Part shown: positions 7,357 through 55,067 of the stretch, in pieces
Layout: the number at the start of each line of letters is the position of its first letter
How positions within the stretch are numbered: the stretch's first letter is position 1
Assembly (NCBI GenBank): GCA_002269645.1
Contig: NIVC01000347.1
Location: 124,001-188,000, forward strand
Length of the DNA: 64,000 bases
Direction of reading: 5' to 3'
Source: Macrostomum lignano
Taxonomy: Eukaryota
Program-made: the position numbers and the translations under genes
Notes under the pieces: generated by a model
Told to the model about the DNA's origin: nothing
Databases searched by the model: none
What the model saw: the letters and a program-made list of their open reading frames with translations, nothing else

Positions 7357-7814
7357 CTATAAGAATGATTTTTGCGCTGCCTCGGATGAGCTCACAGCCA
7401 GGCTCCCTGGGTCGCGTCAAGTCATGCCTTCATCCCCGACCCTCCCCTCAAGAGAAAATTGGAGAGGAAACTGAAATTAGCACGCGACACAATACGGGCG
7501 GGGAAGACGGACGATTCTGAATGGATGAAGGCAGCTGGGCGAGGGATGAGGGCTAGAGGGTGAAAGTGAGCATAATGGATGAGTGTAGACTCGTCTTGAG
7601 CACAGATTTTATATTGGTGAACGCTTGAGTGCGTCTGTCGAGAGCGGAGCTTGAGACTGCTGGCTGCCTGGCAACAGCAGACTGGTGTGACTGAATTATT
7701 CATCTGATCTCATGCCGTGCCTGATTAAGCACAGCAGTGCGCTGCACTTCTGCGCTAGGTTTCGTTTGTGGCCTGATTATGTTTGTCCGGTTTACGAGCG
7801 TATTGACGTGGATG

Positions 7815-7965
<151 letters not shown>

Positions 7966-8770
7966 GTCACAGCTAGAGTCCAAAATTCGTCGCTCGCGAT
8001 TCGCCATGAAGTCGAACTTCCAGCTGGTGGCTTTGGCATTGCAAAAGTTGGCGCTCACTTTTTTAACTTCGGCGTGCAGAAATTCGCGAATTTTTTCCGC
8101 AGTTCGCAGACTTCGATTTCTACGAATCGCCTTCATCAGTGCTTCTGCTTCAAGCGCTTTTTTATTCGCTTTGGAATGCACCGCCCTCAGCTCCCGGTTG
8201 TACTCTGGATCCGACTTTAACCTCTGCTTCATCTGGCCGAAAGCGTGGATGTAGGAGAACTCTTCGGATGCCTGGCTTTGGAACTGATGCTTCAGCTCCT
8301 TCTCTGTACTTCAGCGGCCCGAAGAATCTTAGAGACGCGCCTTTGATGCCATAGACGGTCGCCCTGACGTCGGCGCTGCCCTCCCATTGGCTGGTGAGCT
8401 CGGCCAGCTCGTCGCCGATCTCGTGATGCATCAGCGGCCGACCCCGCCGAATCTGGCGGATGCACAGCCGCATGGAGGACAGGATGAAGCCGCTGTGCCG
8501 CCAGAAATCGTCCGTGTCGCGCACTTGTTCAGCTTCATCAAGGAATTGCTGCGCCTTGGCGAAGTTCGGAAACGGTGGCAGAGTTGATAGGTAGCTAAGG
8601 GTGGTCAGGTAGACAACTGACATCTCAGAGTCTGACAGCCTGTACTCCAGCAACCGTTCAATCACCTGGTCGATGTTGGTTTTTGTGCTCGACTTCTCTG
8701 GTTGCCATAGAAAGTGGCATTCCAGACTCGGCAGATTAAATGAAGCAGTCCTTTGAAGTGAAGCGCTCAT
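7966..8770 (-). pseudogene. Internally deleted IFIT-like paralog (close relative of the 25093-27716 gene, opposite strand)
   Basis: 8770-8290 is near-identical to the first ~480 bp of the 25093 CDS. It then jumps out of frame to the 27127-27430 equivalent, then jumps again to the stop codon/microsatellite. Confidence 0.9.
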
Positions 8771-9069
8771 AGATCCTATTTTGCAGAAGAGCGTAGAAGC
8801 ACTGATAATTTGTGGCTGTAACAAAATTTTGGCTGCTTCTGGTGTAATGCGCCCAGAGCTTCAACTTTTATACACGTTCATGCATGTGTTTAAATCTGTG
8901 CACGCATCTGCGGCTAAACGTATATATAAGTGACAGCAGTGGGAGACTCAGTCTTTTGGTAACACATCTGCCGTGTCTGCAGCGACGTCATGAGATTCTA
9001 TGATTCTGAATCAGCTATAATTCACGAAACTGCATTCCAACACTTTGCATTCTCAATAATACTTACATG

Positions 9070-10480: not shown

Positions 10481-13400
10481 TCAGGTGCGATAAAAATTTC
10501 TAGTTTTCTTGGCCAAGCGTTCGCTTCGCCTGGGTGACGGCTTGGATTGAACTCCGGCCTCAGTCTGTTGCTGTTGTGCTCTCTCAGCTTGTTCTGTTCC
10601 CGGTAGTGTCTCAGTGTCTGTCGATGACGGACGCGTCTGCTGGCCGTCGTCACTTGGACCGTTGCCACCGGGCTTGGAATCCCCCATTTCCGTAGTTCCG
10701 TGAGCCTCAGGTACCTCACCGATTCGTAGTTGATCGAGGTGGGTCTTTAGATTTCGTCCAGTCTCTGTGGTGACGACTGCTGTGTTGCTGCCAAGCATTT
10801 TGGCGAATCTCACAGTTCGTGGCTCATGAGAACTCGATGCACGGTAGATGAGTGATTCTCCTGGGATCCACTTGGACTGAGTGCTGCTCTCCGAGATGGG
10901 GAGTCTTATTTGTCTGCCGTTCAACAACTCGGACGGTGATGCTTGCTGCTTCCCTTTGGCAGCTCTGTAGAACAGTACCGGGTAGAAATCTGTCAATACT
11001 TCTTTGGGATAAACCATTGGTCTTGATTGTCTCTTTGACGGTTCGCACCATTCGCTCTGCAATGCCGTTGCTCTGTGGATGGTAGGCGGGCGTTGTGATG
11101 TGCGAACAGCCAATCTGGGTGAGCCAGCCGGTCACCGCTTCGCTCACAAAACTAGGGCCGTTGTCTGACACGAGACACTTGGGCACCCCCTGTTGTGAGA
11201 ACAATCTTCCAAGTCTGGAAATGACTGTGTCGGCCTTCATGTCGCTCGTGATGAAGACTTCCGGGTAGCTCGAGTGCGCATCCACAATGATGAGTAGGTA
11301 CTTGCCCTCTATTGGACCGGCAAAATCAATGTGCACTCGCTCCCAGGGGTTGTCAGGTTCTGGCCACGAGTGCCGAAAGTTCTTATTTCTGGACTTGTAC
11401 GCGTTGCACACGTTGCATCGTCCAATGTAGTCAGCGATGTCACGGTCCATCTGTGGCCACCAGAACTGTTCCCTCAAAATTGACTTTGACTTTTCCACCC
11501 CAAGGTGCGTTGAGTGTACAGCTGCCAGGGCAGTTTCTCTCAGGACACGAGGCAATACAATTCTGTTCATTCTGTAAATAATTCAATCATTGACAGTTAG
11601 CTCATCTTGAACTTTCGAGTAGCTGAGTAGGTGTGGGTCGTCAAATAGATTATTGTTAATTATGGCTGCGCCCAGGCATCTGAACTCCGGGTCCTCTCTG
11701 GTTGCGTGTGCAATGCGATCCAGCTGAATTACTCCCGGGTTGTCAGCTTCGAGGAGTCCGATCGATGCTGTCTGTGCATTCGGCTTAGCGGGCACCAGTC
11801 GAGATAGCGCATCCGACAGCATTAGCTTTGATGGTCGATACTGTATGACATAGTCATAAGCAGCTAGCATGATTGCCCATCGTTGTAGTCGAGCTGAAAC
11901 TCTGGTGGGCAGCTGTTTGTCTGGCGCGAATATGTATGTGAGGGGCCGGTGATCAGTTATCAGTGTGAACCTCCGGCCATACAAGAACCGATGGCATCTT
12001 TGAATGCACCAAACCAGTGCCAGGCCTTCACGCTCTATTTGCGAATATTTTGTTTCGGCGTCAGACAGAGTCTTGCTCATGTACAGCACGACTTGACCGC
12101 TTTGTGTCAACACTCCGCCCAGAGCTCGCTGAGAACTGTCGCATTCCAGTTCAATGGGCTTCTCCGGATCAAATATTTGAAGACTCGATTGATCAGAGAG
12201 AGTGACCTTGATTTCGTCAAATGCTATTTGACACTCCTTTGTCCACACGAAGTCCTCATTTTTTCTTTCTTAGTCGATTGAGAGGCTTGGTCAGTGCAGC
12301 TAGGTTTCTGATGAACTTGCCGCTAAAATTTACGAGACCCAGGAAAGATTCAAGCTCGCCAACGTTCTGCGGTGGTGTCATGTCCTGGATTGCCTTCACT
12401 TTGGCTGGGTCCGGCTTGAGCTGATCTCCTTCCAATAAGTAGCCTAGAAACTTGATCGAAGTCTTGCGGAATTCACTTTTCGCCGTGTTGATCTTCAATC
12501 CTTGCTGGTTTAGTCGATGCAATACTTCCGTCTCACGAACTGCCAATTGTTCTACGCCTTTGCCGCATATCAATATGTCGTCTACGTAGGCAATGACGCC
12601 AGGAATTCCTTGTAGGACTTGGCTAATGTACCGCTGGAAGATCGCAGGTGCTGTTTTCACTCCGAACGGAAGCTTGTTGAAAGCGAACATCCCAAATGGT
12701 GTTGACATTACTGTCAGCTCTTTGGAAGCTTCATCTAGTGGGATCTGGTGATAAGCTTTCTCTAGGTCCAGACGAGTGCATATCCGGCTGCCAGCAGCAG
12801 CTGCAATCACTTCGTCAGGTGCAGGCATCGGATATGAATCGTTGATAAGATGAGAATTGATTGTCACCTTGTAGTCGACGCAAAGTCTGAGCTTTCCAGA
12901 AGGTTTCTTGACCACGACAATTGGTGAGGCCCATTCACTGAACTTGACGGGCTTGATGGTGTCTTCTTCAAGCAACCGATCGATTTCATCCTTGACTCCC
13001 TGTCTGAGTGCGAAGGGTAGCGGCCTGGGTTTGCAATGAATTGGAGTGGTTCCTTCCTTGATCTTAAGAGTTACTGGTGGAAATTCGCATGACTGGGTTG
13101 CCGATGTGCAGCTGTTGTCTACAGCGTTTAGCGTGAAATTGAGCTTGTCTCGGCCAACCAGAACAAAGTTCCTCTGCGATTCCACAATGAAGAATGTGAT
13201 TGGAATGAACTCGTCATTGTACTCCAACTCAGTGTCGTGTGTTCCAAAGACCTTCATCTGCGTATCAGCGTATGTTGTCAGAACAGTGTCTGTAGGTGTC
13301 AGCTTTGGACAACCCAATCGTTTCCAGATCGTTTTTGACATTACCGAAACTCCTGCCCCAGTATCGATTTGTGCGTTCACGCTAAGCATCGACCCGCTCG

Positions 13401-13485
13401 TGTGTCTGAGCCTAACAGGCACGGTGTAGCTATCAACGGGATGTCGAATGTGAAAACAATCCTCCTGTGTCAGCTTCGCTTGCAT
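10481..13485 (-). pseudogene. Pol (protease, RT, RNase H, integrase), interrupted
   Basis: IDTG protease, YVDD RT, CDSS/DH RNase H, HHCC zinc finger and D-D-E integrase. Lesions: +1 in an A-run at ~12260, in-frame TGA at 11583-11585, and a ~7-bp insertion at ~10976-10982. Confidence 0.9.
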
Positions 13486-14449
13486 CTACAAAGCTTGTGG
13501 TCCTTGGGCTCACTGCAGCTCGCCTAAATTGACCAGATGCTGACGGGCTTTTGAACGATTTTCGGCCTTTGCCAAAACCAGTTGAATTCGTTTTGCAAAC
13601 TGTTGCGAAGTGGTTTTGCATGCCACATTTGTTGCACGTTTTTCCTTTCGCAGGACACCCTCCATTGGAGCCATGCATTGTGCCACATCTGCCACACTTG
13701 GAGCTTGTAGAGTGGGAGCCTCTGGTCACCGATGCTGAAATTTTCATTACTTCAGAAGACTGCGGCTGACTGGTGCAACCCTTTAGTATTTGCGTTTGTG
13801 ATAGGTTCTGGTGCGCCTCAGCGATGTTAATAGCTGTCTCAAACGTGAGAGTGCTGAAGTCCTGTTCCAATAACTTGCTGATGGCCACCTTGTCATTCAA
13901 ACCGAATACGAGCTGATCTCTCAGTCTCTCATCTCTGGATAGGCCAAACTGACACTTGTCTGCCTGCATGCAGAGTTGCTGTGCATACTCACGAATGCTC
14001 ATTGATGCCGTGCGAGTGATATGCTGGAAATTGAATCTCTCAGCCATGACGAACGTCTTTGGTTCCAGGATGCTGGCCAGTAGTTTGGTCAGTTCATCGA
14101 AGCTCTTTTTTCCCGGCTTCTTGGGAGCGGCTCGATCTGCCAATGCGTCGTACAGCTTGGTGCTGAGCTTCATCAGCAGCAGCTTGTTTTTCGTGTCGTC
14201 CTGCCAGCCGTTGAGTTCGCTGCACAGTGTGAATCGGTCCAACCACCTCTGGAAGTTCGAACTTTCATCGAGTTTTTCGATGTCAACTTGCTGTCCTCTC
14301 GATACTTGTGCGCTTGGGTTCTGCGCTGTCGCTGTTGCCGACTTTGTCGCTTGGACTGATTTCGACGAGATCGCAAGCGGTGGTGCTTTGTCGCTCGAAA
14401 CCGTTTTACCAACTCCTTTAGTTGGCGATGCTGGCGTACTTCCAGGCAT
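13433..14449 (-). CDS. Gag (two zinc knuckles)
   Basis: CGRCGTMH..GCPAKGKTCNKCGMQNHFATVC at the C-terminus; Mag-type gag motifs (FRLRDQLVFG-like). Confidence 0.9.
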   Translation of the reverse strand: MPGSTPASPTKGVGKTVSSDKAPPLAISSKSVQATKSATATAQNPSAQVSRGQQVDIEKLDESSNFQRWLDRFTLCSELNGWQDDTKNKLLLMKLSTKLYDALADRAAPKKPGKKSFDELTKLLASILEPKTFVMAERFNFQHITRTASMSIREYAQQLCMQADKCQFGLSRDERLRDQLVFGLNDKVAISKLLEQDFSTLTFETAINIAEAHQNLSQTQILKGCTSQPQSSEVMKISASVTRGSHSTSSKCGRCGTMHGSNGGCPAKGKTCNKCGMQNHFATVCKTNSTGFGKGRKSFKSPSASGQFRRAAVSPRTTSFVDASEADTGGLFSHSTSR

Positions 14450-15054: not shown

Positions 15055-17820
15055 CTAGTCAGTAGCCTCGCCAGCTTGTACTCCAGTGGCCTCACCAGCT
15101 TGTACTCCAGTGGCCTCGCCAGCTTGTACTCCAGTGGCCTCGCCAGCTTGTACTCCAGTGGCCTCGCCAGCTTGGTCTCCAGTAGCTTCACCAGCTTGTA
15201 CTACAGTGGCCTCACTAGCTTGGACTCCAGCAGCCTCACCAGATTGTACTCCAGTAGCCTCACCAGCTCGAACTCCATTGGAGAAAACGGCCCACGTCTC
15301 CTCAGCGAACTCCGCTGCCAGGTGCGCCACATCGTACGCCGTCTTTCGGCACACTCCGCCTCCCGACCAATCAGATTTGAGCTGCTGATTGAGCTCTTTC
15401 ACCAGGATCTCAGTCGAGTGCTTCTCGTTGTTAACCAGGTAGACCCAGCGGACAATCCAGCTGTCCTCACTTGATAGAATTCTGTGCTCACGACTCACCA
15501 TGAAGTTGAATATGTCTCTGGTGTCTCTCGATTGGGGAAAGTTTTTACGAGTATCCTTATCAATTCGCTTTGATTCTTCTAGCAGGCATTTTCGCACGTT
15601 TTCAAGCGTTACAGTATCTTTCTTGAGCAGCTTCATCAGCGACTCGAGCTCGAATGCCTTCCGCTCTGTCTCGGAACTAAGCTGGTTGAACTGCCTTTTA
15701 TAGTCGCCTTCAAGCTGCTTCTTAAACTGGCCAAACGCGTGAGGATATGAGAACTCTCGACCCGATCCCTTAAGCCGAACTGCCAGCGACCGATCGAGGA
15801 CTTCCTTCGCCTCTTTCAGCACCGATACGATCATGTTGTTCATTTCTTGAACTTCTCTACCAGTCTCCTTCATCTGCAGCTTCGTCATGAGAAATCGATT
15901 CGATCTCATGAGGTTTCCGCGATCGCCGGCGCCTTCAGCTGACCGAGTCGAGCCCGCTTTGCTCGTTAGCAGATTGAGCTCCAAGAACTCAGCGATTCTG
16001 AGCTTTACAGACTTCCTTAAATCGTCCAAATCCGATTCAGTTTCAATAACGAAGCTGTTGGAATCATCTATAGTGAGTTCGATCTTGGCGCACAGCTCGT
16101 ACAACTCTCGGCGGAAGAACAGCGGGTCTTTTCCAGCTTGAGCTGATGGTGACGCATCCGCCATCACCCTTTCGGCAGTTTTCTGTTCGGACTTTCGACG
16201 CTCAAGAATGTCGAAAATTCGAGGAGCCGCATCGCGACATCCGCACTCGAGACACTCCTGAAAATGTTTTAGATCAGCCTCGGGATTCTCTAGAAGTGAC
16301 TGAGCCAGCAGTTTGTTTTTACTTTCATGCTCATCTGGAAGCTTCCTAAAACAGTCTACTGCGGCATCGAAGTTTCTGTTCTTCATTAAAAAGCGACCAA
16401 GGTGCTCCAGAGCGAACTCATTACCTTCATCTCGTTCTAATGCGGTTCTGTAAAGCGATTCGATGTCCAGCTTCTTCTTAAATGTGCCAAACAGAGAAGC
16501 AAACCACGCCAGGTACTCTTCTCTGCCTTCTTGTAAACGGAAAAGATCCTCAAAGAAGGCCTGTTTCTTTGCGTAAAACACCATTTCTAAACTGGACTGG
16601 GCCTCTACAGCAGCGATGCACGACTCTATAGCTTCGTCCGTATCACCCTGCTTCATCAAATACAAAGCCTTGCTAAACAGAATAGCTGCCACATCTTTGT
16701 TATACATTGAAAATATCTGACGAAGTGAGTCGAAGTGAGCTACAGATTTATCTTTGCCTAAACTTTCGCTCTGCAGTTCCAGAAGTTTCAGCTCGATCCA
16801 AAGATTACCAGTTGCAGCTGCGACTTCTTGGCCTTTTTTTAGCAGCCGTACTGCTTCATCTGTACTCCCGATTTCGCAGGCTGCACCCGCCATCTCCAAG
16901 TAAAATCCGGAGTCGCTTATTGAAAAGTCTGAACTTTTTACATCGTCCAGTAGAGCCTTTCTTTGCTGGTCAAAACTTTCTTTTGTTCGCCAATTCAGAT
17001 GCCGAAATATTTTTGCGCACACAACGTACATGAAAAACGAATGCTCTTTGAAGCTCTTCGGGCTTTGCAGAAACATGTCGGTAGCTTTTTCAACGAGCTG
17101 GCAACACAATTCGTGGTTTACATTGTGAAGAATTGCTTCTGCATAGTTGGCATAAAAAATGGAGGTTGTGAGATTCTTCTTCTCCCCAATCTCTCTGGCG
17201 GTGCGCCACAGCTCCAACAATTCACTGTCGGCCTGCTTTTTTGCCGTCTGCCTGTTGCACCGAGCCTTTAAAAATGCCTCACCATAAAGCCAATAAAAGT
17301 TTTCTGGTTGTATTTCTTTGGCCCTGGAAAAAGCCTCAACACCAATAGCATACTTTTTGGGTCCGAAACAGTCAAAAGTGACGCCTTTGACTCCGAAGAC
17401 TTGAGCTCGTTTGTTATTGTCATTCCACAGACTGCTGAGCTCGCGAAGTTCCTGTGCAAGTACGTCCTCTTCACGCTTCTGGAACTTTTTACTTGTATTT
17501 CCGCGCATCTTTTTGAGGTGCAATACGTCAGCTCTGATTACATACTCGCTGGATACGTGCAGGTCAGTCTGATTGTCTGACTGAATTTGAGCATCAATGC
17601 GTCGCGCCTCATCCAGGAGTTCTTGCGCTCTGACGAAATCCACGCGCATCTTTTGGGTATGTAGGTATGCCAGCGTAGTGAGGTAGGCGACCTTCTTGTG
17701 AGGCTCTCGGTTGATCTTTCGTTCTGTGGTCTTGATCACGTCTTCGATGTTGACTTTTGTACTTTCCTCGTCAGGACGCCAAGTAAAGTGACACTCCAGC
17801 TGGTCCAAGGTCTCAACCAT
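15055..17820 (-). CDS. IFIT-like tetratricopeptide-repeat protein (921 aa, intronless) with a conserved C-terminal HEPN-like domain and an 8-aa repeat tail
   Basis: LDQLECHFTW matches the IFIT N-terminal LEQL(R/E)CHFTW. AYLTTLAYLH...AQELLDEA and FGPKKYAIGVEAFSRAKEIQPEN match IFIT TPR segments (cf. GGKNYERAKACFEKVLEVDPEN). Long helical TPR-like body. Confidence 0.8.
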   Translation of the reverse strand: MVETLDQLECHFTWRPDEESTKVNIEDVIKTTERKINREPHKKVAYLTTLAYLHTQKMRVDFVRAQELLDEARRIDAQIQSDNQTDLHVSSEYVIRADVLHLKKMRGNTSKKFQKREEDVLAQELRELSSLWNDNNKRAQVFGVKGVTFDCFGPKKYAIGVEAFSRAKEIQPENFYWLYGEAFLKARCNRQTAKKQADSELLELWRTAREIGEKKNLTTSIFYANYAEAILHNVNHELCCQLVEKATDMFLQSPKSFKEHSFFMYVVCAKIFRHLNWRTKESFDQQRKALLDDVKSSDFSISDSGFYLEMAGAACEIGSTDEAVRLLKKGQEVAAATGNLWIELKLLELQSESLGKDKSVAHFDSLRQIFSMYNKDVAAILFSKALYLMKQGDTDEAIESCIAAVEAQSSLEMVFYAKKQAFFEDLFRLQEGREEYLAWFASLFGTFKKKLDIESLYRTALERDEGNEFALEHLGRFLMKNRNFDAAVDCFRKLPDEHESKNKLLAQSLLENPEADLKHFQECLECGCRDAAPRIFDILERRKSEQKTAERVMADASPSAQAGKDPLFFRRELYELCAKIELTIDDSNSFVIETESDLDDLRKSVKLRIAEFLELNLLTSKAGSTRSAEGAGDRGNLMRSNRFLMTKLQMKETGREVQEMNNMIVSVLKEAKEVLDRSLAVRLKGSGREFSYPHAFGQFKKQLEGDYKRQFNQLSSETERKAFELESLMKLLKKDTVTLENVRKCLLEESKRIDKDTRKNFPQSRDTRDIFNFMVSREHRILSSEDSWIVRWVYLVNNEKHSTEILVKELNQQLKSDWSGGGVCRKTAYDVAHLAAEFAEETWAVFSNGVRAGEATGVQSGEAAGVQASEATVVQAGEATGDQAGEATGVQAGEATGVQAGEATGVQAGEATGVQAGEATD
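15058..15268 (-). repeat. Coding 24-bp tandem repeat, (AGEATGVQ) x ~8.5
   Basis: ctccagtggcctcgccagcttgta units at the 3' end of the IFIT-like CDS. Confidence 0.95.
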
Positions 17821-19349
17821 CGTAGCAGCGGACCCTGTGAAACTTTTGGGTACAAAATTTGCTTTCAGTCGTCTAAGTAAGTTAAAGAAATGTTTTTTTA
17901 TTGTCCTGTATTGAAATATATGTTAGATTAATATTATCACTGAAAACATGCCAAATACCGAAGGCGCACTTAATCGCAAACCTACGAGCGTAGTACGAGG
18001 AGAGTCAGCACTACTTGCAATGCGAGTGTCTCGCTTCTCTTTACTCCAAGGCCTTTCTCTAACTGCGTCTTTTAAGCTAAAAAGATGAAGAATACGAGCT
18101 AGTTGAACACTTATGGGGCAGATAGTGCGCACAAAATGCATCTTAAAAGCTGTGTCGGTTTTACAGTGCTGCCCTATGCATTGTTTGAGTTCAATTTGTT
18201 GTGTACTCTCTGCTTGCTTATGTGGTTCAGAGCAATTTTAGTGTTTGTGTACATAAATTTACAGGGACTGTTACAGTGACAGGCGACAGCAAGCGCAAAC
18301 ACTCCAACCGCATACAATATTAATCATTGTTTTCTAAGAGCTGATCTAAAGTACATGTTCTCAGAATCAAAGCACGCAGGAAAGCTTGCTTTCGCCTGTT
18401 CTGTGCGTTCTGCGCGTCCATGCCTGATAAGGCTCAAGACTTCGTTGAGCATCCCTCGATGCGCGTAGAGTGTGCATATGTCGTCGTAGACCTGAACACT
18501 GTCCTGCGTAGGTTTGAGCGGTCTCTGTTCGAGACGCCGCATAAGAACGGAAACTTCCTAGAGGACTTCTCATGGACCTCTCCAGACTCTCCTGAAGAGG
18601 CAGGACATGGTGTCGGTCAACACCCGTTTTCGCAAGCCACCGGGAGGACTTTCAACCTATGTGTGCTGCAAGCGAAGACGGCAAGAATGCGCGTGGCCGA
18701 AAAGCAACACAGAGGCAAACAGAACTCAAACATGTGCTTGTGCGCTTTTGGGAGCGCCGCCGCGCCGTTAACTGCCGGTCCATCACACCACTGACTCCTC
18801 GTCTCCTCGGGAGGCCTCAAATTCAATAACTCGATAGAAATATACTGTATAATAGCAGCCGGCAATAACACAGCTCTCAATAATCGAATAACAAAGACTT
18901 TGACTAAGGCTTACCGATCGATATAAGCTTCTCTCAGAGATTTAGCCTCTCGGTTCATGTTAGTTTGTCTCGAGTTCTCTTGAGGCTGCTTCGAGGCTGC
19001 TACGAGTCTGGATTTCAGCTCAGATTTTTCGCTTATATTTATACCCGTTTTGAGTCGACCTTGAGCTCAAACCGTTTTTTTGATGAGTTTACGAAAGGAC
19101 TTTATTTGACAGATGAGATTTTCGAAAAGAAGCAGTGAAACTTAGGTCAATTTAAGGTTAACGTTTACATTTTTTGCGAGTTCTAAAATTAAATGTTGCG
19201 AACCGGTTTTTCGCATAATGAAATTGTAATTCACTGTTTTCGTGATAATACTAACGCATGCAAGGTGGGTTCAGCACGCCTGTGTAGCATGAGACAGACC
19301 AGGCCTACGAGCTAAGGTCTGCGATCCTACACACCTGCACCCCCTATAT

Positions 19350-22300
19350 TCTGGTGCAGGAATATGTACGGTGCTGAAAAACCTGTTTATCTACATGGAG
19401 GACGAGCGACCCCAGACACACCGGCACCGTGCCTGGATTTTGGCTCGCAGCTGCATCACCAAGGCCGACGAGCTGCGTCACCTGCTAGTGGCTACCAACC
19501 CGGCGCTACCGGCAAACGGTGTCGTAGTTCACAAGACCATCTCCAAGCCGGGCGGAGATGGTTTCACGGCTATTCTAGGACTGTCGGATAGCTGGATGCT
19601 CCGCTATCCGGACATGTCCCTCATCTCTGTCGGGCTGATGCAGATTCAGCTCTTTAGCTTTGAGTCTGACGCCACCCGTCCACCGCCCCCGGAGAAGCGT
19701 AAGCGGGCGAGCGGGCACCGCCCGCGGAGAAGCGTAAGCGAGCGAGCGGGGGCTCTGCCGGGCGGAAACGCCCAGGAAAAGAAGCTCCCGGTCGTCACGA
19801 CCCCTCCGAGGACGTGGACCCTGTCAGAGGGAAAGCCGCGAAAGCTGCAGCAACAGGCGGACGTGGAAAGGGCCGGGAAACCCACCCGGAACACTATCCG
19901 CTCTGGTCTGACTCAGCGCGCGAAGCAGCTGCTGGACACCGCCAGGGCCCACAACCGCAGCAACCCCCAGCCCAATGTCACCACTGCGGCCCCCCAGAAA
20001 ACCGGGCTGAGAGCGAGAATGCCGCCCAGGTGGAGGCATCGCCCTCGACCATGGAGACCATCCAGGAGGAGCCCATGGAACTGGAGCCTGGAGCTATCGG
20101 CGAGGCAGAAGAGGTGGCTCTCCTGCACAACTCGCCCTGAGCCGGCAGGAAGCTGCGCGGACCACTCGTGGATTCCCCGGAGTGGACATCCTGCAGCTAA
20201 ACCTACACCACTGCATCGCGGCCTCGACCAACCTGATGCGGGTGGCAAACTTTGCGAAACCGGGCATCATCCTACTCCAGGAGCCCTGGACAAAGAAAGG
20301 TAAGATTCTGAATATTCCTGCTGGTTTTGACTGTTTTCAAGACCACCAAAACCCCAGAGCAGCCATGTTCGTGTCTACCCATCTCAAAGCTTGGCACAGA
20401 CCGGACCTCTCTGACAGAGATCTCTGTGTGATTCAATTCAACCATATTATCACCAACCGCACGGTCATCATCGCCTCGATCTATATCCCTGGCGATGGCC
20501 CCGCGGTTCCACCCAACCTCATCTCCCTCGTGGACTACTGCTCTAACTGTAGGTTCGAGCTGCTGGTGGCGGGCGACGTCAACGCTCACCATACCCACTG
20601 GGGCAATAATACTTCCAACAGCAGAGGCGAGGAACTCCTTGCTTACATCTGCACCACCAATACTGAGTTTTGCAACATTGGTGGAACCCCCACCTTTGAC
20701 AACGGGCGATGGACGGAGGCCCTCGACGTTACCCTCGTCTCCCATGGCTTGACTCCTTTAGTCAAGGACTGGGAGGTTTGGGACGAATAGGAATCTCTGT
20801 CTGACCATCGCTTCGTTCGTTTCCGATTGCAATCCTCTTGCCCCAAGCCTCACATCCTGTGGAAAAGGAACGTCCGGAACACTGACTGGACGGCTTTCAC
20901 GGAAACCCTGAAACGCCAGACAGATCAGCTGTTTACCGCCGCTCCAACCACCTGTCAGGAAGTGGATGACCTTGCAGACTTGCTCAGCAAGACCGTCCTG
21001 ACAGCCCATGAGGCTTCCTGTCCTCTTAAAGCCTACAAAGGCACAATATCCGCCCCCTGTTTGCACCCGGCGCTTGGATCCCTCCGGCGCAAGGTAAAGT
21101 ACTTCCAACCGTAAGCTCGCAAGAGCAAGGACCCAGCTGACCTGGCCGCCTACCAAGAAGCGATCCGCGACTTTAAGCGTGAAACCAGGAAAGCCAAGTC
21201 CGACAAATGGCGCCAATACTGCGCGGAGTTAGAAGGCACCCGTCCTACTTCGCGCGTAGTTAAGGCTCTCACTCTTGACAAAATGTAAAAGCTCTCAGTT
21301 ATTAAAAGACCGGACGGCCGGCTCGCTGAGAACCCTGGGGAATCGCTGGACATCATGCTCACCAGCTCTTTCCCACGTGCCGCACAGCAGCTAGGCCCAC
21401 CGGACCACTCTCCGGGCGGACAGATCCTGGCTTCGACCATCATTACTAGAGAGAGGACGGCTCGCGCCGCAAAATACTTCTCTCCTTTCAAGTCACCAGG
21501 ATCTGACAACATTTATCCTGCCTTCCTCCATGAGGCAGTTATAAATGACAGGTTTCTCGGCCTCCTCTGCAACCTCTTCAAGGCCAGCATTACCCTCGGG
21601 TACGTGCCAAAAGCCTGGCAAGAGGCTACGGTAGTCTTCACACCCAAGCCAGGGAAGGGAGACTGATGGAACGGCTGGTGCTCTGGCGCCTTCTCCTCGT
21701 AGAGCTGAGGAACTCCCCGCTCTCCCCTAACCAGCACGCCTTTCGTTCTGGACGCTCCATCGAAAGTGCGCTGCACGCCATTGTCGACAAGCTGGAGCGC
21801 GCCGTGCTTGGCAATGGATACGCGCTCTCGCTTTTCCTCGACATTGATGATGCTTTCAATAATGTGCTCTTTGAAGTCTTTAAGCGGGCCCTGGAATCCC
21901 GGGGCACGCACGAGCACCTCACTCGCTGGATCATGTACATGGTCTCCCATCGTACTGCCACCTCGCGCCTCCTGGGACACTCGCGCTCCGTGGAAGTCCA
22001 GAAAGGCGGACCGCAAGTCCTAAGCCCGAAGCCCGATCCTCTCCTAAGCCCGATCCTCTGGAATATAGTCATGGACGAGCTGCTTTGCAGCCCGCATCCG
22101 GACCCAGTTTAGAAGGTCGGCTATGCGGATGATGTTACCGCCACTGTGGCTGGACCATCACCCGCGGTCCTCAGGGACTCCTTCAAGCCTTCATCCACCG
22201 TGCCGAACGCTGGGCACACAGCTGCGGTCTCAGGTTCTCTGAGTCTAAAACCGTGGCTATCATGTTCACCAGCCGCCGAAACTGGAGGATCGAACCGCTC

Positions 22301-23110
22301 TCCCTCTATGGCAAACCTGTTGCCATGGAGAAACAAACCAGATGTCTGGGCGTCACCCTCGACCACAGGCTGAGCTGGACCCCGCACGTCCAAACCAAAG
22401 CCCACAAAGCCCTCGCGACTCTCGCGCAGATCCGCAGAGCTTTCGGCGCTACCTGGGGCCTCACCCCCCGCCGCCTCTGGTGGATTTACACTGCCATTGT
22501 TAGACCGGCCATCTCCTTCGCCGGCTTCATTTGGAACAGTGCCATAGAAATGAAAGGGGTTCTTTAGGTTCTAAATAGGGTGCAAGGCCGCGCTTGTCGA
22601 GCTATCATGAGCGCGGCTCCCTCTGCGCCCTTCGCTGGCATGAACTCCTTGGACATTCCCCCCTCTACCTCTTTGTTGGGTGTCCAAATCCAGAAGCAGT
22701 TTGCCTTCAGAAAGCGGAATTTCCGGCCGCATGGCGACCTCAGCCTGCGAGACCTGGAAGAAGCGAGAGGCATTCCACCACGTCATGAAGCAAGAGACAA
22801 CTGGAAACCCCATGAAATCCACTGCTTCACTGACGGGTCCCAAATCAACTCCGCCTCTGGCTACGGCTACTGCATCGTGTCTGGAGGGAGAACTATGGCG
22901 ACCTTCTCCCAACACACCGGCACCTGCTCCACCGTCTTCCAGAACGAAGTTCTCGCCATTAGCTCCTGCGCCATGGAGCTGTACAATCAGCGCGTCTGGG
23001 GGAAGGAAATTACCCTCCAATCAGACAGCCAAGCGGCGATTCACGCCCTTGAGCGCAGCACCACCTGCTCGCGTACAGTCCTCGACTGTATCGGGCAGCT
23101 CAACCGCTTA
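19350..23110 (+). mobile_element. Decayed non-LTR retrotransposon (LINE; R1/LOA/I-group type with RNase H)
   Basis: ORF1 remnant, then APE endonuclease (ILQLNLHH, LLQEPW, GDVNAHH, SDH), RT (KSPGSD, LFLDI..AFNNV, YADD, LGVTLDHRLSW) and RNase H (FTDGS, EVLAI, SDSQAA). Many stops, frameshifts and deletions; truncated at ~23110. Confidence 0.92.
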
Positions 23111-23510
23111 GGCACAACATATCTTTTGATATTTTGTGCCTTTCTTATTGTTCTATCGATATTCATAAAGCTTTTTGTTCAGAAAATTAGGATTCCATGT
23201 TAATTTTTTATTCTACGTATATTTGTGCACGTCTAGTGCCTAAAAACCATTAAAATGGCACAGCTTGGCTCTTTGCTTTTATGAGTCTATTTCATCATTC
23301 TTAGCTGACTGTGTAACAAATATGCGTAGCAAAAATGATAAAATGGATTCATAGAACCAAAGATTTGGAGCTGTACAATGCATTATTATTATTTTTAGGT
23401 ACAGGAAACGTACGTAAAATAAATAATTAATATAGAATCCTAATTTTCTGAACGAAAAGCTTTACAAATATCGATAGAGCAATAAGGAAGGCACAACATA
23501 TCAAAAGATG
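23111..23510. mobile_element. MITE-like element with ~100-bp imperfect terminal inverted repeats
   Basis: 23121-23220 is the reverse complement of 23410-23509 (atcttttgatat..ttgtgcc..ttattg.tctatcgatatt..aaagctttt.gttcagaaaattaggattc). Confidence 0.7.
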
Positions 23511-23899
23511 AGCATTGGATCTGCCTCCTATCAAAAGCAAAAGCAATTTGTGTGCTGAAAAAATGAAAAATTCTTATCTCCGTAGTGTATTTTTCCGGGA
23601 AAACCTGCCTTCTAAAATTTTCTAAGAAACAAGGTTTCCCGTCTTTTCGTCCTTGTTATGATCGCGTGACATTTAAAATTTTGGTTGTGCAAATTTTTAT
23701 CTTACTACTTCTAGTAGTCTGCTTGCACTGTATTTCGAAGATCTCTACACCGCCACTGTTAACGCGCCACCACCCCGCTGCCAGACAATCCCAACTTCCG
23801 CCAGAGACGCCGTTGTCGGAAGAGGAAAATTAATTTTAGCGTTGCACCAGCCGTGCACTGCCTGCTAGAGCACATCGAGGCTGAAATTTAGTGCGGAGG

Positions 23900-24300
23900 C
23901 AGTCGACGGAGATTCTGCGTTGCCAGTAGTTTATCTACCTCAGCGGTCTGGTTTCTGGCTTACGCGTGGATCTGTAGCGTCGCCGTGGGCGTGTCTTGGC
24001 TGCCTTTCGTTCTGTGAGGGGAAGCCCTGCAGTCTGAGGCCCTGTCTGACTGCCCTGGCACTGTTTCAAGCAGTGATCGAGACCGTCCTGCTGTACAACG
24101 CTGAGACCTGGACGTTGACGGACTCACTCGACCAACAAGTAGACGCGGCACAGCTGGTCTGCTGCGCGAAATATTCAAGATCGGCTACGAGCGATGGACC
24201 AACGTGGCACTTCTATCTATACGCGAGTCTGTAGGCTGTCGTGCGTCGTACGCTCGAGCAGCCTAGTCCCGACGGACACCGCGTTGTACGCGTGTCAGTG
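23900..24300 (+). mobile_element. 3' fragment of an RTE-like LINE
   Basis: Decayed LPVV..RRRG..AAFRS..LQSEALSD..LFQAVIETVLLYNAETWTLTDSL; same family as 9070-9490. Confidence 0.7.
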
Positions 24301-25092
24301 GAGGACCGCAGCCAGGGTCAGTACGCAAACCCGGGTCTGGGAAAGGGGCACGAAAGGACCAAGCCCTTGAGCCCCATCACCAAAATTATTTAAAAATTAG
24401 GCGACTTCTTTTCAACAAAATGTTTCTAGTGAAAGTTTTTAGGAGATGAGGTTTCACTATTCATTTACTCCTTAAAAAATAAAGTCCTTGTGAATAATAT
24501 TGGAATTGTAAGTCATCGCAATGGTGCTTTTTGACGTACTTTTACGAGCGTATTCTAAACAACGATACTAACAAAGGACAACATTGCCTGTAAAAGATTT
24601 GATATCGCTTAAAATTTAGCTTAAATTTCAGAGAGATAAATGATAAGAAGCGTTACCATTAAAATTAATCTTCAGAGCTTCAGCTACATTTTCAGGAAAA
24701 TTACAGTGGGAAACGTACACAGAACAGTTGGAAAAATGAGTTAGTGAAGTACAGGTCTGGATAAGAAAGGCTGGCGCCAACAAAAGCTCACTGCACAGTG
24801 CGCATCGACTCTCCCAGTAAATGCAGAAAGAAAGCTGCGAGTGCACAATACACAGACAGTCTGCTCTGCCAGACGAAACACCAACAAGAATGGCCCACCG
24901 CCGTTGTTCACTCACATGTACGAGCGTACGTCTATTTTTAGCTGCAGACGCATAAACAAATTTATCCACTACGTACGTACATTAAAGTTGAGTAAAAGTT
25001 AAAGCTCTGGATTCAATTGCACCAAAAGCAGCAGCGACAGTTTTTGTTCCAGCCGCATCAAATCAGTGATTCCATATAGAATCTAATTTCAC

Positions 25093-27716
25093 ATGGACGC
25101 TTCACTTCAAAGGACTGCTCCATTTAATCTGCCGAGTCTGGAATGCCACTTTCTATGGCAACCAGAGAAGTCGAGCACAAAAACCAACATCGACCAGGTG
25201 ATTGAACGATTGCTGGAGTACAGGCTGTCAGACTCTGAGATGTCAGTTGTCTACCTGACCACCCTTAGCTACATGTACCTATCAACTCTGCCACCGTTTC
25301 CGAACTTCGCCAAGGCGCAGCAATTCCTTGATGAAGCTGAACAAGTGCGCGACACGGACGATTTCTGGCGGCACAGCGGCTTCATCCTGTCCTCCATGCG
25401 GCTGTGCATCCGCCAGATCCGGCGGGGTCGGCCGCTGATGCATCACGAGATCGGCGACGAGCTGGCCGAGCTCACCAGCCAATGGAAGGGCAGCGCCGAC
25501 GTCAGAGCGACCGTCTATGGCATCAAAGGCGCGTCTCTAAGATTCTTTGGGCCGCTGAAGTACGAAGAAGGAGCTGAGGCTTACGGCTTGGCCTTGGAGC
25601 TGCAGCCAGACAACTTCAGATGGCTTTGGGGGAAAGCGTACCTGCTGGCCCGGCAAACTAGACAGGGCAGACCCGGTGAGATCCCCGAGAGTCAGCTGAA
25701 CCTATGGACTCGAGCCTACGAGATTTCCACCAGGGATGGAATCCGAAACCCGACTTTTTGTGCCAACTTCTCCGAGGCGGTGCTTAGCGACCGAGCTCTG
25801 ACCGCGTGGTGCGAAAGTTTGATGGATGAAGCAGTTGAACTGTTGGAACGGCTGGGAAGAGACGAGAAGGCCAAGCACCCGGTAGCCTTTCTTATTGGTA
25901 TAAAAGTTTACAAAAGGTTAAAATCATTTGGAAAGTATTATACGCTTCTTGATTTAGCACAAACAGTCGACCGATGCAAAAGTTCTAGCTTTTATTTGGA
26001 GATTTCTAGACTGCATATGAGAAATGGCGATAAACAGAAGGCTCTGGAGGCACTCAGAATTGGTAAAAATGCTGCAATGCACCCTGGTAACCACTGGGTC
26101 GACCTTGAACTCATTGAGCTGGAAGCTGAGGATGTTGGAATAGAAAATACGCTCCAATCCTTTGACTCCCTGCTGGCGTCAAACTATCGCGTATATGACC
26201 GGGTCATTGCATGCATTCGCTTCAGAAAGGCGCACTTTTTGTTTAAATGCAACCGGAACCAAGAAGGCTTCGAGGAATGCCTGCTAGCATTCAAGACGTG
26301 TCCGGATGCTGTGGAGAACTTTCAGGACTATCGATATGAGGAAATTCTGCAAGCATTACAAAACTGGCCGGATCATGAAGAATATGAGGCCTGGTTTCGC
26401 ACTAATATCATGTCCTGCATTCAGCGCCAAGACAGCATTCACATCGAGGATCAGTTTCACAGAGGGCTGTTGAGAAATAAGCGCAACCATTTCGCCTGGG
26501 AGCACCTGGGGGGTTCTATTTAAAGGAACACAAGTACCAACTGGCTTTCGACTGTTTCAGTCAGTTACCGGGCGACTCGGACCTGCCAGACGGTACACGT
26601 AGAGACGATTTGCTGACTGAAGCCCTTCTACAGAATCCCAAAGCCAGTCTGGAAGACATTGAGCTCTGCTTACAACTTGGTCATCACGAAGCTGCACTAA
26701 GAGTGTTCGACTTCTTAAACGACTGCAAAACTGACCTTGTAAAACGGGTGTTGGAAATGGCGAACGGGGGTGACTCGCAAAGGGCCAGGGACTCCAGTCT
26801 GATGTTTTTCAGCCGCCGTGTCTACCAGCTGTGCGCCCGAGCTCAAAACCTGGCTGATGACTACGTCAGCAATGCGGCTGATCAGTCAAATGTGGCTGAC
26901 GCGGTGCGCAAACGAGTGAGGGACCTGCTGGAGCTCGGCTCCGTCAGCACAGCGGCCGCAGCTCCGGCTGCAGCAGCAGGCAGCGATCGCGGCAACTTGA
27001 TGCGACAGGCGAGGTTCGAAGCAGTCAAGCTGCACTGCCGAGGTAGAGGGTCCACAGAGGAGTGCTGCAACTCGATCGTGCTCACTCTGAAGGAAGCCAA
27101 GGAGCTGCTCGACCGGTCCTTTGCTCATCAGTTCCAAAGCGAGACATCCGAAGAGTTCTCCTACATCCACGCTTTCAGCCAGATGAAGCAGAGGTTAAAG
27201 TCGGATCCAGAGTACAACCGGGAGCTGAGGGAGATGCAGTCCAAAGCGGATAAAAAAGCGCTTGAAGCAGAAGCACTGATGAAGGCGATTCGCAGAAATC
27301 GAAGTCTGCGAACTGTGGAAAAAATTCGCGAATTTCTACACACCGGAGTCAAAAAAGTGAGCGCCAACTTTTGCAACGCCAAAGCCACCAGCTGGAAGTT
27401 CGACTTCATGGCGAATCGCGAGCGACGAATTCTGGAGGAGGAAAACCGCTGGCTCATTCGCTGGATCTACGGAGTGAACATGGAGAAGCACAAGGTCGAA
27501 CTGCGGGTTGGCGACATCGAGCAGCATCTGGCAGCCGACTGGTCCGGCTGGGACGGCTGCCGCACCGCCTACGAGCTGGCGAACTTGGCCGCCGAGTTCG
27601 CCGAGGAGACGTGGCTGATTCTGGGGCCGCAACGGCTGGACGGTGACAGCGGTTCTGCGGGTACCGAACCTGAGGAGAATCACCTTGCCGCAGAGTTTGC
27701 GACTCTGCGACTCTAG
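25093..27716 (+). CDS. Second IFIT-like TPR + HEPN-like-domain gene (~874 aa), split by a 1-bp frameshift in a G6 run (26508-26513)
   Basis: LECHFLW and FFGPLKYEEGAEAYGLALELQPDN. Adding one G joins ORF 25093-26523 to 26610-27716 as EHLGGFYLKE (paralog: EHLGRFLMK). C-terminal motifs are shared with the 921-aa copy. Confidence 0.8.
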
Positions 27717-27723
27717 CTGCGAG

Positions 27724-28256
<533 letters not shown>

Positions 28257-32486: not shown

Positions 32487-33997
32487 CTAGAACGCGGATA
32501 AGGTGAAGTGGAACTGCACTGTTTACAACTTCTGGCATTGAAGTGCAGCTTTCCCACCATGCATTCGTCTTGATGTATGCGCGGAATTTACATTTCTGGG
32601 GTTTTTGCGTTGAGGGAATAATTAATGAAGGGCATGGTTAGTAACAGTAGAAAATCTACTCATATCCCGCGCATAAACGTAATCCATTAAATGTTTGTTT
32701 GTTAACGCTTGATTCTGAGCTGGCGCGCTGGTGAGCACATGAGTCCGCTGAGTGGGCAGAGCTGTCCAGAAGGCGTTGCGCCAGGGTGTCTGCAACTCTT
32801 TTGCGAATATTTTCTCCAATTGTGGTTTACAGTGGAAAAACATTCCACCTGACATGAAGCACGGTCTTGTTCCTCCTGACCACCATGGTTCGCAGAGCCT
32901 TAATAGAGAAGTGTATTACTCAATAAATGTCTTCAGGAAACAGGTGATCGCTAAATGATTTAATATCCTGAACAATGTCGCTTCATATAGGTGAATAGTT
33001 ACTGTTGATCCGAAAGTTATTTAGTGAGCTGTAATTTCCTGATCTCAGTTAACGTCTTCCGTCCGTCCGTGAAAGTTTTTTCCTTCGGATAGTAATCTGC
33101 ATTGCATTCAAGCTTGGGCTCTTGGATGGCCCTGCGCGTACTTGGTACTTAACTCGTACATGTTGAATAACCTTTCCAATTTCAAACATGCGGTAGTTCT
33201 TGTGGGCGCTCTACTGGCTCTATTGATATTTAACATCGGAATGCAATAATGGCTTCGTTGGAGTTTGTGCGGATTTGAATCTGCCCAAGGGATATTTGGT
33301 GTGTGGCGACCGATGCAGATACGAGAATGCACGCGCTGGGGAAATGTAGCACTGATAATGGGAGGTAGAACCCATAGCTGGCCCTAGCTACATCCGTCAT
33401 TTTTGGATAGGTAAAGTTTTAAACAACACGTTCTGAGCATTAACGCACTAACCATAAGGAAGTGGACGCATTTAGTGTCCCCATTAACCATTGTATATTT
33501 TAGCGTTGCCAACCAAGCTGATTAAATAAATATATTGCTGGAAATATGTTACTGAAAAATCTAGGAAAGAAATATTACAATTCCAGGTAGCCTTCAACCA
33601 GGAAGTGTCAGCTTGCTATGGTATAGTTCGGGAGGGCATCGTATAGTGTGTGCGTGTGTAGCTATTTGAACGTGTTGCGTACTCCTTGCGCTCCCTCTCC
33701 CTCTCGGCTCCCAACCCTCTTTCTCTCTCCTTCTGATCTTTCATTTGCTGTCTGCTTCAAGGCTTCTAGGAGGAGGAGGAGAAAATACTGGAAAAGGGTA
33801 AGAGAGGCAGAGAGACAGAGAGCTAGCAGGGCATTACGAAGGTTGGTTGGGCGCGCACTGCAAGCCTCCCAACTATAGAAGAGGGGCCCGGTCTTAATTC
33901 AAAAAATCCAAGGGAGATTCGCATCGCAACAGAGCGCGCAACAGGCCACGCGTTGCTGGAGCTGCAGCCGAAATCATTTCTGCCAACTGGAGCCGAC

Positions 33998-41426
<7,429 letters not shown>

Positions 41427-43977: not shown

Positions 43978-45231
43978 TCAGTGAGTTGCGAACGGAGTCA
44001 GCAGATACCCAAGAAAGATGACAACGATGGCAACGCTGCCAACCAAAGCCATCAGCCTCTCCAGGGCCAGCGCCGCCACCACCCAGTCGGAGCGGCTCGG
44101 TCCATGAACGCCCTCGACACCGACGTCCACCTTCGAGTCGCTGGTGGAGGTGCACAGCAGGCGTCCCAGGCAGGTCACGAACACGAGACGGAGACACGGC
44201 GGCATCGGCTGGGTGTCCGCAGCGAAGTGGAATCGAATCACGACCGACGTGAGCAGCAGGGACAGCGACGACAGCACCATGGCCGCCGTGATGAAGGACG
44301 CCACGACCGGCATTGATTGCGACTTGGGCAGCAGGCCGTCCAGCAGCAGCAGGAACACCGTGTAGCTCAGCATGATGGTGATGCCGAAGCCCAGCTTCTC
44401 TCCGGACTCGACTGGCACGATGAAGATCAGCAACTGGAGCAGCGTTAGCAGCAGCAGGGGAGCCACCACGTTCAGCAGATAGTAGTTGGACACGCGCTCG
44501 ACAGTCATGCGAATAACGTAGCTTGGCAGCGGCAACTTTGGCTGGCCCTTGAGCATCTCGTAGTACCTCAGATGCACGAATGTGCTCAGATTCAATAGTC
44601 TCCACTCGCTATTAACGACGTAAATCGCCAGCTCATTGTTCATTGGGTTGCCAATGGCAGGCTGGAGAAGATGGTGACCCCGACCTTGGTCGCTGCAGAA
44701 CAGTTCCATGTCGCAGACGTGCTTGTCGAATGGAAATAGCCTCATGTCGAATTTGCAGGAGAACTCCCATTCCTGCTTCCAGGTTGTCTCTGCAACTGTT
44801 GCCCTGGGCGAACTGGAAGTGAGGATTATGGGAAACTGCGGCTTGAGCAGCTGGTTGTCGCCTACGCCATTGTAAATGAGAATCACGGGAAACCAGATTT
44901 GACTGGAGTCCCAGTCCATGACAGTCACGTTTCCAAAATCGGCCGGATCCCAGACCAGCCGCTCCTCGGTCCAGCCAGCCTGAAGGTAAGCGGATATCTT
45001 GACAGTCTGCTTAGCGCTGTCCACAGCTACAATTTGGCTGAGCAGAAAGGTGAAATTGAATAGCATCACCTGGTCCGGGTCCAACACTGGCCGAACTATC
45101 GGACTGTAGTCCGTGATGTTGTTCTTCAGATACTTCATCAATTCTATTTGATAATCTCTCTTGGAATGAACAGATTGATTGAGTATTACCATGGTAACAG
45201 AAAGTATTAACCAAAATCGGCTGTGCGACAT
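43978..45231 (-). CDS. Intronless Cys-loop ligand-gated ion channel subunit (nicotinic acetylcholine receptor-like, non-alpha), 417 aa
   Basis: Signal peptide, VRPV, WTEERLVWDP, IWFP..IYN, Cys-loop CKFDMRLFPFDKHVC, TM1 YYLLNVVAP, ESGEKLGFGITIMLS TM2, TM3 and TM4. Confidence 0.92.
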   Translation of the reverse strand: MSHSRFWLILSVTMVILNQSVHSKRDYQIELMKYLKNNITDYSPIVRPVLDPDQVMLFNFTFLLSQIVAVDSAKQTVKISAYLQAGWTEERLVWDPADFGNVTVMDWDSSQIWFPVILIYNGVGDNQLLKPQFPIILTSSSPRATVAETTWKQEWEFSCKFDMRLFPFDKHVCDMELFCSDQGRGHHLLQPAIGNPMNNELAIYVVNSEWRLLNLSTFVHLRYYEMLKGQPKLPLPSYVIRMTVERVSNYYLLNVVAPLLLLTLLQLLIFIVPVESGEKLGFGITIMLSYTVFLLLLDGLLPKSQSMPVVASFITAAMVLSSLSLLLTSVVIRFHFAADTQPMPPCLRLVFVTCLGRLLCTSTSDSKVDVGVEGVHGPSRSDWVVAALALERLMALVGSVAIVVIFLGYLLTPFATH

Positions 45232-54300: not shown

Positions 54301-54991
54301 TGGCAATGTACAGTGTTTTGGAATAACTTTTTATAGCCTTCTCTGCACCCCCGTGGAGAGGCTACTGGCTTTCGAAGTAGGGATTGGCAGACTTTTACTT
54401 CAAAAGCCAGATAAAGAATCCAGCTTATGTGCGGGCCAGATGAGAGTGGAAAGGAGAAGGAATAGACTATTAGAAGAGAGGAGAGGCGAGAGGGGCATTA
54501 GAGAAAATATGGAAGATAAGAAGAGAGACAAGTGGTGAGAAGAGAGCAGAGAAGAGAGGGGTGTAAGAAGAGGGGAGAAAGGAGAGATGAGATTGTAGAG
54601 ATGAGACAAATGAAATGAGAGATTAGAGAGTAAAGATGAGAGATGAAAAAGGTGAGAGGAGAGTGCAGAGAGACGAGAGAAGATAATAGAGGAGAGTGAG
54701 TATAGAAGAGGGAAGAGAAAAGAAGAGAGGAGTAAGGAAAGAGAGGAGTCAGAAGAGGTGAAAGAAAAGAGTACTCAGGAGATAAGTGAGAGAACGTATA
54801 AGAGAGTAAAGATGACAGATAAGAGAGCAGAGATGAGGGTGAACAGACGAGAGATGGGAGAGTAGAGAGAACAGAGGAGAGATAAGAGAGAAGAGATTAC
54901 AGAGACTAGAGGAGAGTGGAAAGACAGGTAGAGAGAAGAGGAAATAGGAGAATGAAGAGGGGAGAGAGGAGAAGAGAGATGGGAGAGGAGA

Positions 54992-55067
<76 letters not shown>

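Follow-up and report, generated by a model that had tools for sequence, protein, structure and literature searches.

The flatworm Macrostomum lignano encodes a family of proteins in which an IFIT-like region built of tetratricopeptide repeats (TPRs) is fused to a conserved, predicted all-alpha module of about 350 amino acids (aa). The window, that is, the whole stretch of DNA analyzed, comprises 64,000 nucleotides of contig NIVC01000347.1 (assembly GCA_002269645.1, positions 124,001 to 188,000 of the forward strand) and contains three copies of this family, two of them damaged. The intact copy is gene 1 (P0001), whose N-terminal 500 or so aa are, by sequence comparison, a true relative of the vertebrate IFITs. 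IFITs are textbook interferon effectors and are TPR-only proteins of about 450-490 aa. The fusion of an IFIT-like part to an orphan module, and the module itself, appear to be new. In the explanation that best covers the observations as a whole, to which a probability of roughly 55% is given, genes 1 and 2 of the window belong to a small, lineage-restricted, RNA-directed family that evolves through the birth and death of its genes; its members would combine an IFIT-type superhelix that holds RNA with a ligand-binding site in the C-terminal module.

Gene 1 lies on the minus strand at 15055..17820. The preliminary description of this DNA had called it an intronless gene of 921 aa, and it is a single intact open reading frame (ORF) of that length, without introns. 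The IFIT-type TPR region (aa 1-500; 16321..17820) has the motif LECHFTW at its start (aa 8-14) and the motif FGPKKY..GVEAF..A.EIQPEN inside (aa 152-174). The first part of the family-specific all-alpha module (aa 501-764; 15529..16320) retains the motifs ECL.LG..D, LFFS..YE.CA, R..RL..TK, L(K/R)(E/D)(A/S)(K/R)..LD, and YPHA, and is followed by the best-conserved core (aa 765-850; 15271..15528), which has four predicted helices. The remaining residues (aa 851-921, with the stop codon; 15055..15270) form a low-complexity (AGEATGVQ)n tail; its coding sequence consists of 9.2 tandem copies of a 24-bp unit, which make up the 3' end of the gene (window positions 15060-15281). Within the C-terminal half, the motif GDRGNLMR begins at aa 632, LKEAKE at 668, EFSYPHAF at 689, VNNEKH at 796, DWSG at 817, and AEFAEETW at 836. 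All the IFIT and C-terminal block motifs quoted in the preliminary description are found in gene 1, and its ranges for the block, 15290-15930 and 26985-27614, match gene 1 aa 632-846 and the counterpart in gene 2. The closest named relatives of gene 1 are M. lignano hypothetical proteins: P0002, 48% identical over the full length, and P0003, 86% identical over the C-terminal half.

The kinship of the N-terminal half with IFITs emerges from profile searches. On single sequences, Pfam reports generic TPR families only for this half of gene 1, and a search of PDB sequences with gene 1 alone returned no IFIT. A profile of three sequences (aa 1-220) matches IFIT5 (3zgq) at E=3.8e-8, in register from LECHFTW onward, and all of its remaining natural matches are IFIT3, IFIT2, or IFIT1. 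With a profile of 23 sequences, IFIT5 is matched in one stretch at E=4.5e-19 (profile 10-330 against chain 12-313) and IFIT1 over nearly its full length at E=1.1e-11 (8-408 against 12-420), followed by IFIT2 (E=5.8e-10) and IFIT3 (E=4.2e-7). The best natural TPR protein outside the IFITs is OGT, which this profile matches at E=4.7e-5 and in short pieces only. The motif L-x-C-H-F-T-W precedes the first TPR and aligns position by position with residues 16-22 of IFIT5, and it is present in full-length family members.

It could be argued that these are generic TPR scaffold proteins whose resemblance to IFITs is an artefact of repeat composition. Designed consensus TPR proteins also score high against the profiles, through repeated short matches; the Pfam assignments to generic TPR families point the same way; and Liu et al. 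2013 (PMC3688568) considered IFITs to have arisen in, and to be confined to, jawed vertebrates and judged invertebrate TPR matches not to be true IFITs. Yet the match to IFIT5 and IFIT1 starts at a motif that is not part of a repeat and continues as one collinear stretch of 300-400 residues, all natural matches above the 1e-5 level are IFITs, and an Arg found across the family corresponds to IFIT5 R186. Because the match is collinear from the N-terminal motif onward and the IFITs stand far above OGT, the likeness is not an effect of TPR composition, and this alternative is very unlikely. The IFIT-like N-terminal part of the preliminary description is therefore retained: IFIT5, IFIT1, IFIT2, and IFIT3 align collinearly from the CHFTW motif, many orders of magnitude above other natural TPR proteins. 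Searches of the literature on invertebrate IFITs gave nothing usable beyond PMC3688568, and a search by M. lignano gene identifiers found nothing.

The residues with which IFIT5 contacts RNA (K150, R186, R253, K257, R260, Y156, and Y250, together with the pocket residues E33, T37, and Q41) are listed in PMC9677429 (Table 5) and PMC13197388, and were mapped onto the family by alignment only. Equivalents of several channel residues are kept in the flatworm proteins: R186 is Arg in 19/22 members (gene 1 R187), K257 is Lys in 14/19 (gene 1 K270), R260 is Arg or Lys in 11/18 (gene 1 R273), and Y156 is Tyr in 14/22 (gene 1 Y157). From this alignment, RNA binding in a basic channel can reasonably be inferred.

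The second half of the protein is defined by its own family. In an alignment of 28 members, conservation spans the entire region of about 350 aa (gene 1 aa 501-850); the conserved C-terminal domain of the preliminary description thus exists, although the extent of about 210 aa given there was too small. Local hidden Markov models (HMMs) of the "middle" (501-764) and the "core" (765-850) find the two together in nearly all members. Word-indexed homolog searches retrieved only one or two proteins each, and the wider family comes from running HMMER exhaustively against 1.84 billion representative proteins, which yielded 51 proteins at E<=1e-3, 34 of them at <=1e-10. All named relatives with the module are M. 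lignano paralogs. The others come from animal assemblies in ENA (ERZ26859043, ERZ25074608, and ERZ25069296) that are not M. lignano; their contigs are 40-750 kb long, carry animal genes, derive from at least three samples, and have a GC content of about 38%, compared with 45-50% in M. lignano. A signature peptide of the module was not found in IMG/VR viral contigs or in JGI metagenome contigs.

Conservation of the module is greatest at its end, where the last 85 or so aa hold eight near-invariant polar residues and two invariant Trp. The two Trp (W788 and W792) and E840 occur in all 28 members, E778 and E837 in 27, R777, N797, and H801 in 26, and K800 and H833 in 25. The late N-x-x-K-H motif singled out in the preliminary description is accordingly preserved in further homologs (N797 26/28, K800 25/28, H801 26/28). 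In a comparison with the closest paralog, the ratio of nonsynonymous to synonymous substitution rates (dN/dS) drops from 0.43 (aa 501-631) and 0.40 (aa 632-764) to 0.15 in the core (aa 765-850), which is thereby identified as the most constrained part, under purifying selection. Since the block is kept in 28 members that are only 21-30% identical overall, its conservation is far beyond chance.

An AlphaFold2 model of the module, built from the 28-sequence alignment, is all-alpha with 16 helices (predicted local distance difference test score, pLDDT, 87.7; predicted template modeling score, pTM, 0.89); an earlier model from a 4-sequence alignment (pLDDT 54) was discarded. Foldseek searches with the whole-module model as the query, a method that is weak on small helical bundles, found nothing significant in PDB (best E=0.41, TM score <=0.21) or in BFVD (best E=0.068). 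The module profile matched no natural protein among PDB sequences, the only match being a designed helix bundle at E=0.11, and no Pfam, PADLOC, or NCBIfam family was matched by more than one of 18 members. The possibility that the C-terminal half is a diverged duplicate of the TPR half was rejected (hhalign probability 0.2%). DUF1722 (PF08349, bacterial YbgA-like) was rejected, the match being ascribed to the chance likeness of a charged helical segment: gene 1 aa 649-734 score 29 bits against a Pfam gathering threshold of 22.5, P0003, 86% identical, falls below the threshold at 18.3 bits, and P0002 and gene 2 give no match. The assignment to chance follows from the fact that only 1/18 family members matches. 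By these sequence and model comparisons, the module is an orphan with no detectable relatives outside its own family.

The company that the module keeps varies among the paralogs. P0020 has an RRM upstream of the IFIT part (Pfam RRM_1, 5.5e-9). In P0048 and P0058, the module has little or no IFIT part and is followed by CCCH-type fingers; both carry the UniRef name "C3H1-type" and each has two C-x6-9-C-x4-6-C-x3-H patterns. P0002 and P0024 end in RGG-type repeat tails, and the tails of the paralogs differ from the repeat of gene 1. As judged from these sequences, the module is mobile among M. lignano paralogs. RRM, CCCH, and RGG partners are all RNA-binding elements; the family is for this reason read as one of RNA-directed proteins, and the combinations suggest an RNA-directed function for the module itself.

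The preferred explanation joins these parts into one molecule. By homology with the vertebrate proteins, the TPR superhelix of the IFIT family (aa 1 to about 500) would most likely accommodate single-stranded RNA in a central basic channel. Fused to it would be the predicted all-alpha module of about 350 aa, ending in the four-helix core of about 85 aa. Within this core, the polar cluster R777/E778, N797/K800/H801, and H833/E837/E840, beside the two invariant Trp, is a putative specific ligand-binding site. In the model, the Arg/Glu pair is placed on one helix, the Asn/Lys/His group at the end of the next, and the His-x3-Glu-x2-Glu series on one face of the last. Such a site may be metal-dependent and catalytic, and would read, or act on, either the RNA in the IFIT part or a partner bound to that RNA. 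A ligand-binding site is favored because its make-up exceeds the usual needs of a scaffold. As a rough division of the prospects for the predicted C-terminal site, binding alone is given somewhat better than even odds, some form of catalysis is thought possible but is distinctly less probable, and a HEPN ribonuclease (RNase) is highly improbable. An immune role is plausible, given the IFIT ancestry and the duplication and decay of copies in a transposon-rich region.

Several points weigh against this explanation. K150 of IFIT5 is not conserved (Cys in 9/22 members and in gene 1), R253 is Arg or Lys in only 8/19 and is Val in gene 1, and Y250 is likewise not conserved in genes 1 and 2. The residues of the 5'-triphosphate/metal pocket, E33, T37, and Q41, fall in columns that are mostly D/N/S, V/I/L, and L/T (N24, V28, and T32 in gene 1). 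Because the pocket residues, K150, and R253 are not conserved, IFIT5-like specificity for 5'-triphosphate RNA cannot be assumed. The predicted fold of the module is novel relative to PDB and BFVD only, and the module may have a distant HEPN-like or other known fold, small helical domains being hard for Foldseek. Finally, the RRM, CCCH, and RGG partners and the rapid duplication fit germline RNA regulation as well as they fit immunity.

The proposal of the preliminary description that the C-terminal domain is HEPN-like is not supported: the defining Arg is missing from all 28 members except, at most, a few, no HEPN family of Pfam, PADLOC, or NCBIfam matches, and there is no significant fold neighbor. 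In its full form, this reading makes the domain a HEPN-type metal-independent RNase and the protein a one-chain RNA sensor and nuclease. HEPN RNases (RNase L/Ire1 KEN, Cas13, Csm6/Csx1, RnlA, and HepT) do resemble the module in being all-alpha, with a conserved His and a conserved Asn four residues before it, and they share with the flatworm proteins the notion of joining a sensor to an effector. The near-invariant N797 and H801 are spaced as are the N and H of the R-N-x-x-x-H variant, one paralog (P0020) has a literal RNKAEH, and Csm6, the single HEPN protein among the Foldseek matches listed, is at rank 30. However, the module differs from these enzymes in having no conserved Arg and no match to them in sequence profile or, significantly, in structure. 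Just ahead of N797, 10 of the 28 members have V, 10 have D, and 4 have I; positions 795 and 797 are not Arg either, and P0020 is the one member in which R-N-x-x-x-H was read. None of 18 members matches a HEPN family in Pfam, PADLOC, or NCBIfam even at E<=1, and the PDB profile search and Foldseek results given above contain no natural sequence match and no significant structural one. The Csm6 match itself (E=2.6, probability 0.08) is spread over 307 columns and so is not specific to the domain. The HEPN motif stands at the start of the last core helix, whereas the N..KH motif of the modeled module spans the C-terminal end of a helix and the loop after it. A HEPN RNase is therefore a very remote prospect. 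A more serious competitor, although still a doubtful one, is that the module only extends the TPR solenoid, for structural reasons or for oligomerization and partner binding, and has neither a ligand pocket nor catalytic activity. Vertebrate IFITs oligomerize via their C-terminal regions; the module is predicted to be all-alpha, its weak Foldseek neighbors are proteins of the helical-repeat or scaffold type, among them designed repeats, 14-3-3, and importin, and many of its invariant residues are small or hydrophobic (A832, A835, F838, W788, and W792). A scaffold of this kind would not readily account for eight near-invariant charged or polar residues within 65 aa in proteins that are only about 25% identical, or for a peak of purifying selection exactly in the core. 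Moreover, the module is unrelated to the TPR part (hhalign) and is also found with little or no IFIT part beside CCCH fingers or RGG repeats.

Two further alternatives concern what the proteins do. With the same molecular make-up, the role could be regulation of endogenous RNA (e.g., in the germline or in translational control) and not antiviral defense, which is a tentative possibility that deserves weight. We know of no interferon system in flatworms, and M. lignano has many fast-evolving reproduction-related families; RRM, CCCH, and RGG elements are typical of ribonucleoprotein-granule and germline RNA regulators, and the triphosphate pocket is not conserved. The IFIT ancestry argues in the other direction, as does the turnover of copies, which has left pseudogenes and an inverted duplicate amid abundant transposons, but neither is decisive, and CCCH fingers are present in antiviral proteins such as ZAP as well. 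The most ambitious reading would make the module an effector or enzyme domain not described before, one that has a new fold and in which the His/Glu/Arg/Asn/Lys cluster is a putative active site on RNA. Coupled in flatworms to an IFIT-type sensor of RNA ends, and separately to RRM and CCCH binders, it would create single-chain sensor-effectors of an interferon-independent RNA surveillance; this is considered unlikely.

The evolution of the family by birth and death is visible in the other two copies of the window. Gene 2 (25093..27716, plus strand) is a paralog of gene 1 with the same architecture and one frame change, which divides it into two ORFs of 476 and 368 aa. The preliminary description had presented it as an intronless gene of about 874 aa; the architecture is as stated there, but the single ORF is not, the two pieces lying in different frames. 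A single frame break is indicated because homology to gene 1 runs on across the change of frame. The break sits within a short homopolymer run, and so a genuine lesion and a long-read assembly error are equally likely; from the sequence, gene 2 may be either a pseudogene or the product of such an error. No intact copy of gene 2 on record was found, and its two pieces were kept separate in all analyses, without joining of the frames. The LECHF motif of gene 2, of the L-x-C-H-F-T-W type, occupies aa 16-22, and the conserved C-terminal block, at 26982..27623 on the plus strand, is the counterpart of gene 1 aa 632-846. Genes 1 and 2 are 33% identical both in the N-terminal half and over gene 1 aa 504-631, a figure that rises to 47% across aa 632-846 and to 53% within aa 765-846. 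This agrees with the earlier view of two proteins that are divergent overall with a more conserved C-terminal block (33% in the N-terminal half versus 47% over aa 632-846).

The third copy (about 7790..8870, minus strand), which the preliminary description did not mention, duplicates gene 2 in part, in inverted orientation and with an internal deletion, and is a pseudogene remnant. It matches the 5' part and the 3' part of gene 2 at 91-95% DNA identity, while about 1.5 kb of the middle is absent, and it ends in the same (TCTA)n microsatellite as gene 2. These microsatellites lie directly past the 3' ends of gene 2 (27724-28254, 133 copies) and of the truncated duplicate (7815-7965, 38 copies), and they yield long spurious (SIYL)n ORFs. 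Similar events are found elsewhere. On ENA contig ctg185430 (ERZ25074608), P0006 is followed 3-8 kb downstream by a second family member, which has the same orientation and matches in three pieces (L003 15374-20569); as far as sequence can tell, this pair shows tandem duplication of the family in an animal other than M. lignano. In M. lignano contig NIVC01004191.1, an IFIT-like N-terminal half (L005 5927-8546) is present just upstream of P0003 in other reading frames. P0003 is annotated as 393 aa that cover the C-terminal half only, and this paralog is either a broken gene or the result of faulty assembly or annotation.

Set beside vertebrate IFITs, the flatworm proteins share L-x-C-H-F-T-W and F-G-x-x-(K/Y)-Y ... 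P-(D/E)-N and are collinear with them over about 300-400 residues. They differ in being twice as long, with a non-TPR module of 350 aa added (921 aa in gene 1, with its repeat tail), and the flatworm genes in the window are intronless. The family also has TPR-only IFIT-like relatives of 405-472 aa (P0040-P0043) with a CHFTW-type N-terminal motif, among them UniRef100_T1JLK3, which, to judge by its accession series, is probably from the centipede Strigamia maritima, and one protein from a Logan assembly. P0041 on its own gives a collinear match to IFIT5 at E=3.5e-5. The TPR-only P0040-P0043 lack the C-terminal module; the fusion is found only in M. lignano and in the animal assemblies of 38% GC.

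Clear IFIT-type proteins are therefore present in a flatworm, and IFIT-sized relatives in at least one other invertebrate, which would make the IFIT fold considerably older than interferon. Automated annotations already call some invertebrate proteins "IFIT-like," and for this reason an IFIT fold outside vertebrates may not be wholly new to specialists. Fusion to a constrained domain offers a handle on the pre-interferon role of IFIT-like proteins. The module defines a new domain family that recurs with RRM, CCCH, and RGG elements. Should the module turn out to be an effector, its proteins would have a sensor-effector architecture new to animal RNA surveillance; should it be no more than a scaffold, they would still correct the picture of IFIT evolution.

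The copies are separated by mobile elements. Between the third copy and gene 1 lies a long terminal repeat (LTR) retrotransposon (10481-14449, minus strand) with gag (DUF7083), protease-reverse transcriptase, RNase H, and integrase in order; judged by the ORF frames, its pol region is interrupted by one in-frame stop and by two or more frame changes, not counting the usual gag/pol offset. Between genes 1 and 2 are fragments of a non-LTR retrotransposon (19371-23203, plus strand) with endonuclease/exonuclease/phosphatase and RNase H domains in separate ORFs. This element is degraded, and its reverse transcriptase region is in no long ORF. Animal genes are found downstream at 33953-41426 (plus strand), 43978-45231 (minus strand), and 59571-60668 (plus strand), among them a gene for a Slowpoke/BK-type K+ channel, one for a Cys-loop ligand-gated ion channel, and an ORF with a weak likeness to ZIP transporters. 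The Ion_trans, BK_channel_a, and RCK domains of the Slowpoke/BK-type gene are in separate exon ORFs. The Cys-loop receptor gene beside P0042 and that of the window were considered as a sign of synteny, but they are only 30% identical and provide no evidence of it. An AT-rich block at 48000-58000, with a GC content of 27-33%, is probably satellite or simple repeat; within it, positions 54001-56000 have a GC skew of 0.45 and an AT skew of 0.32.

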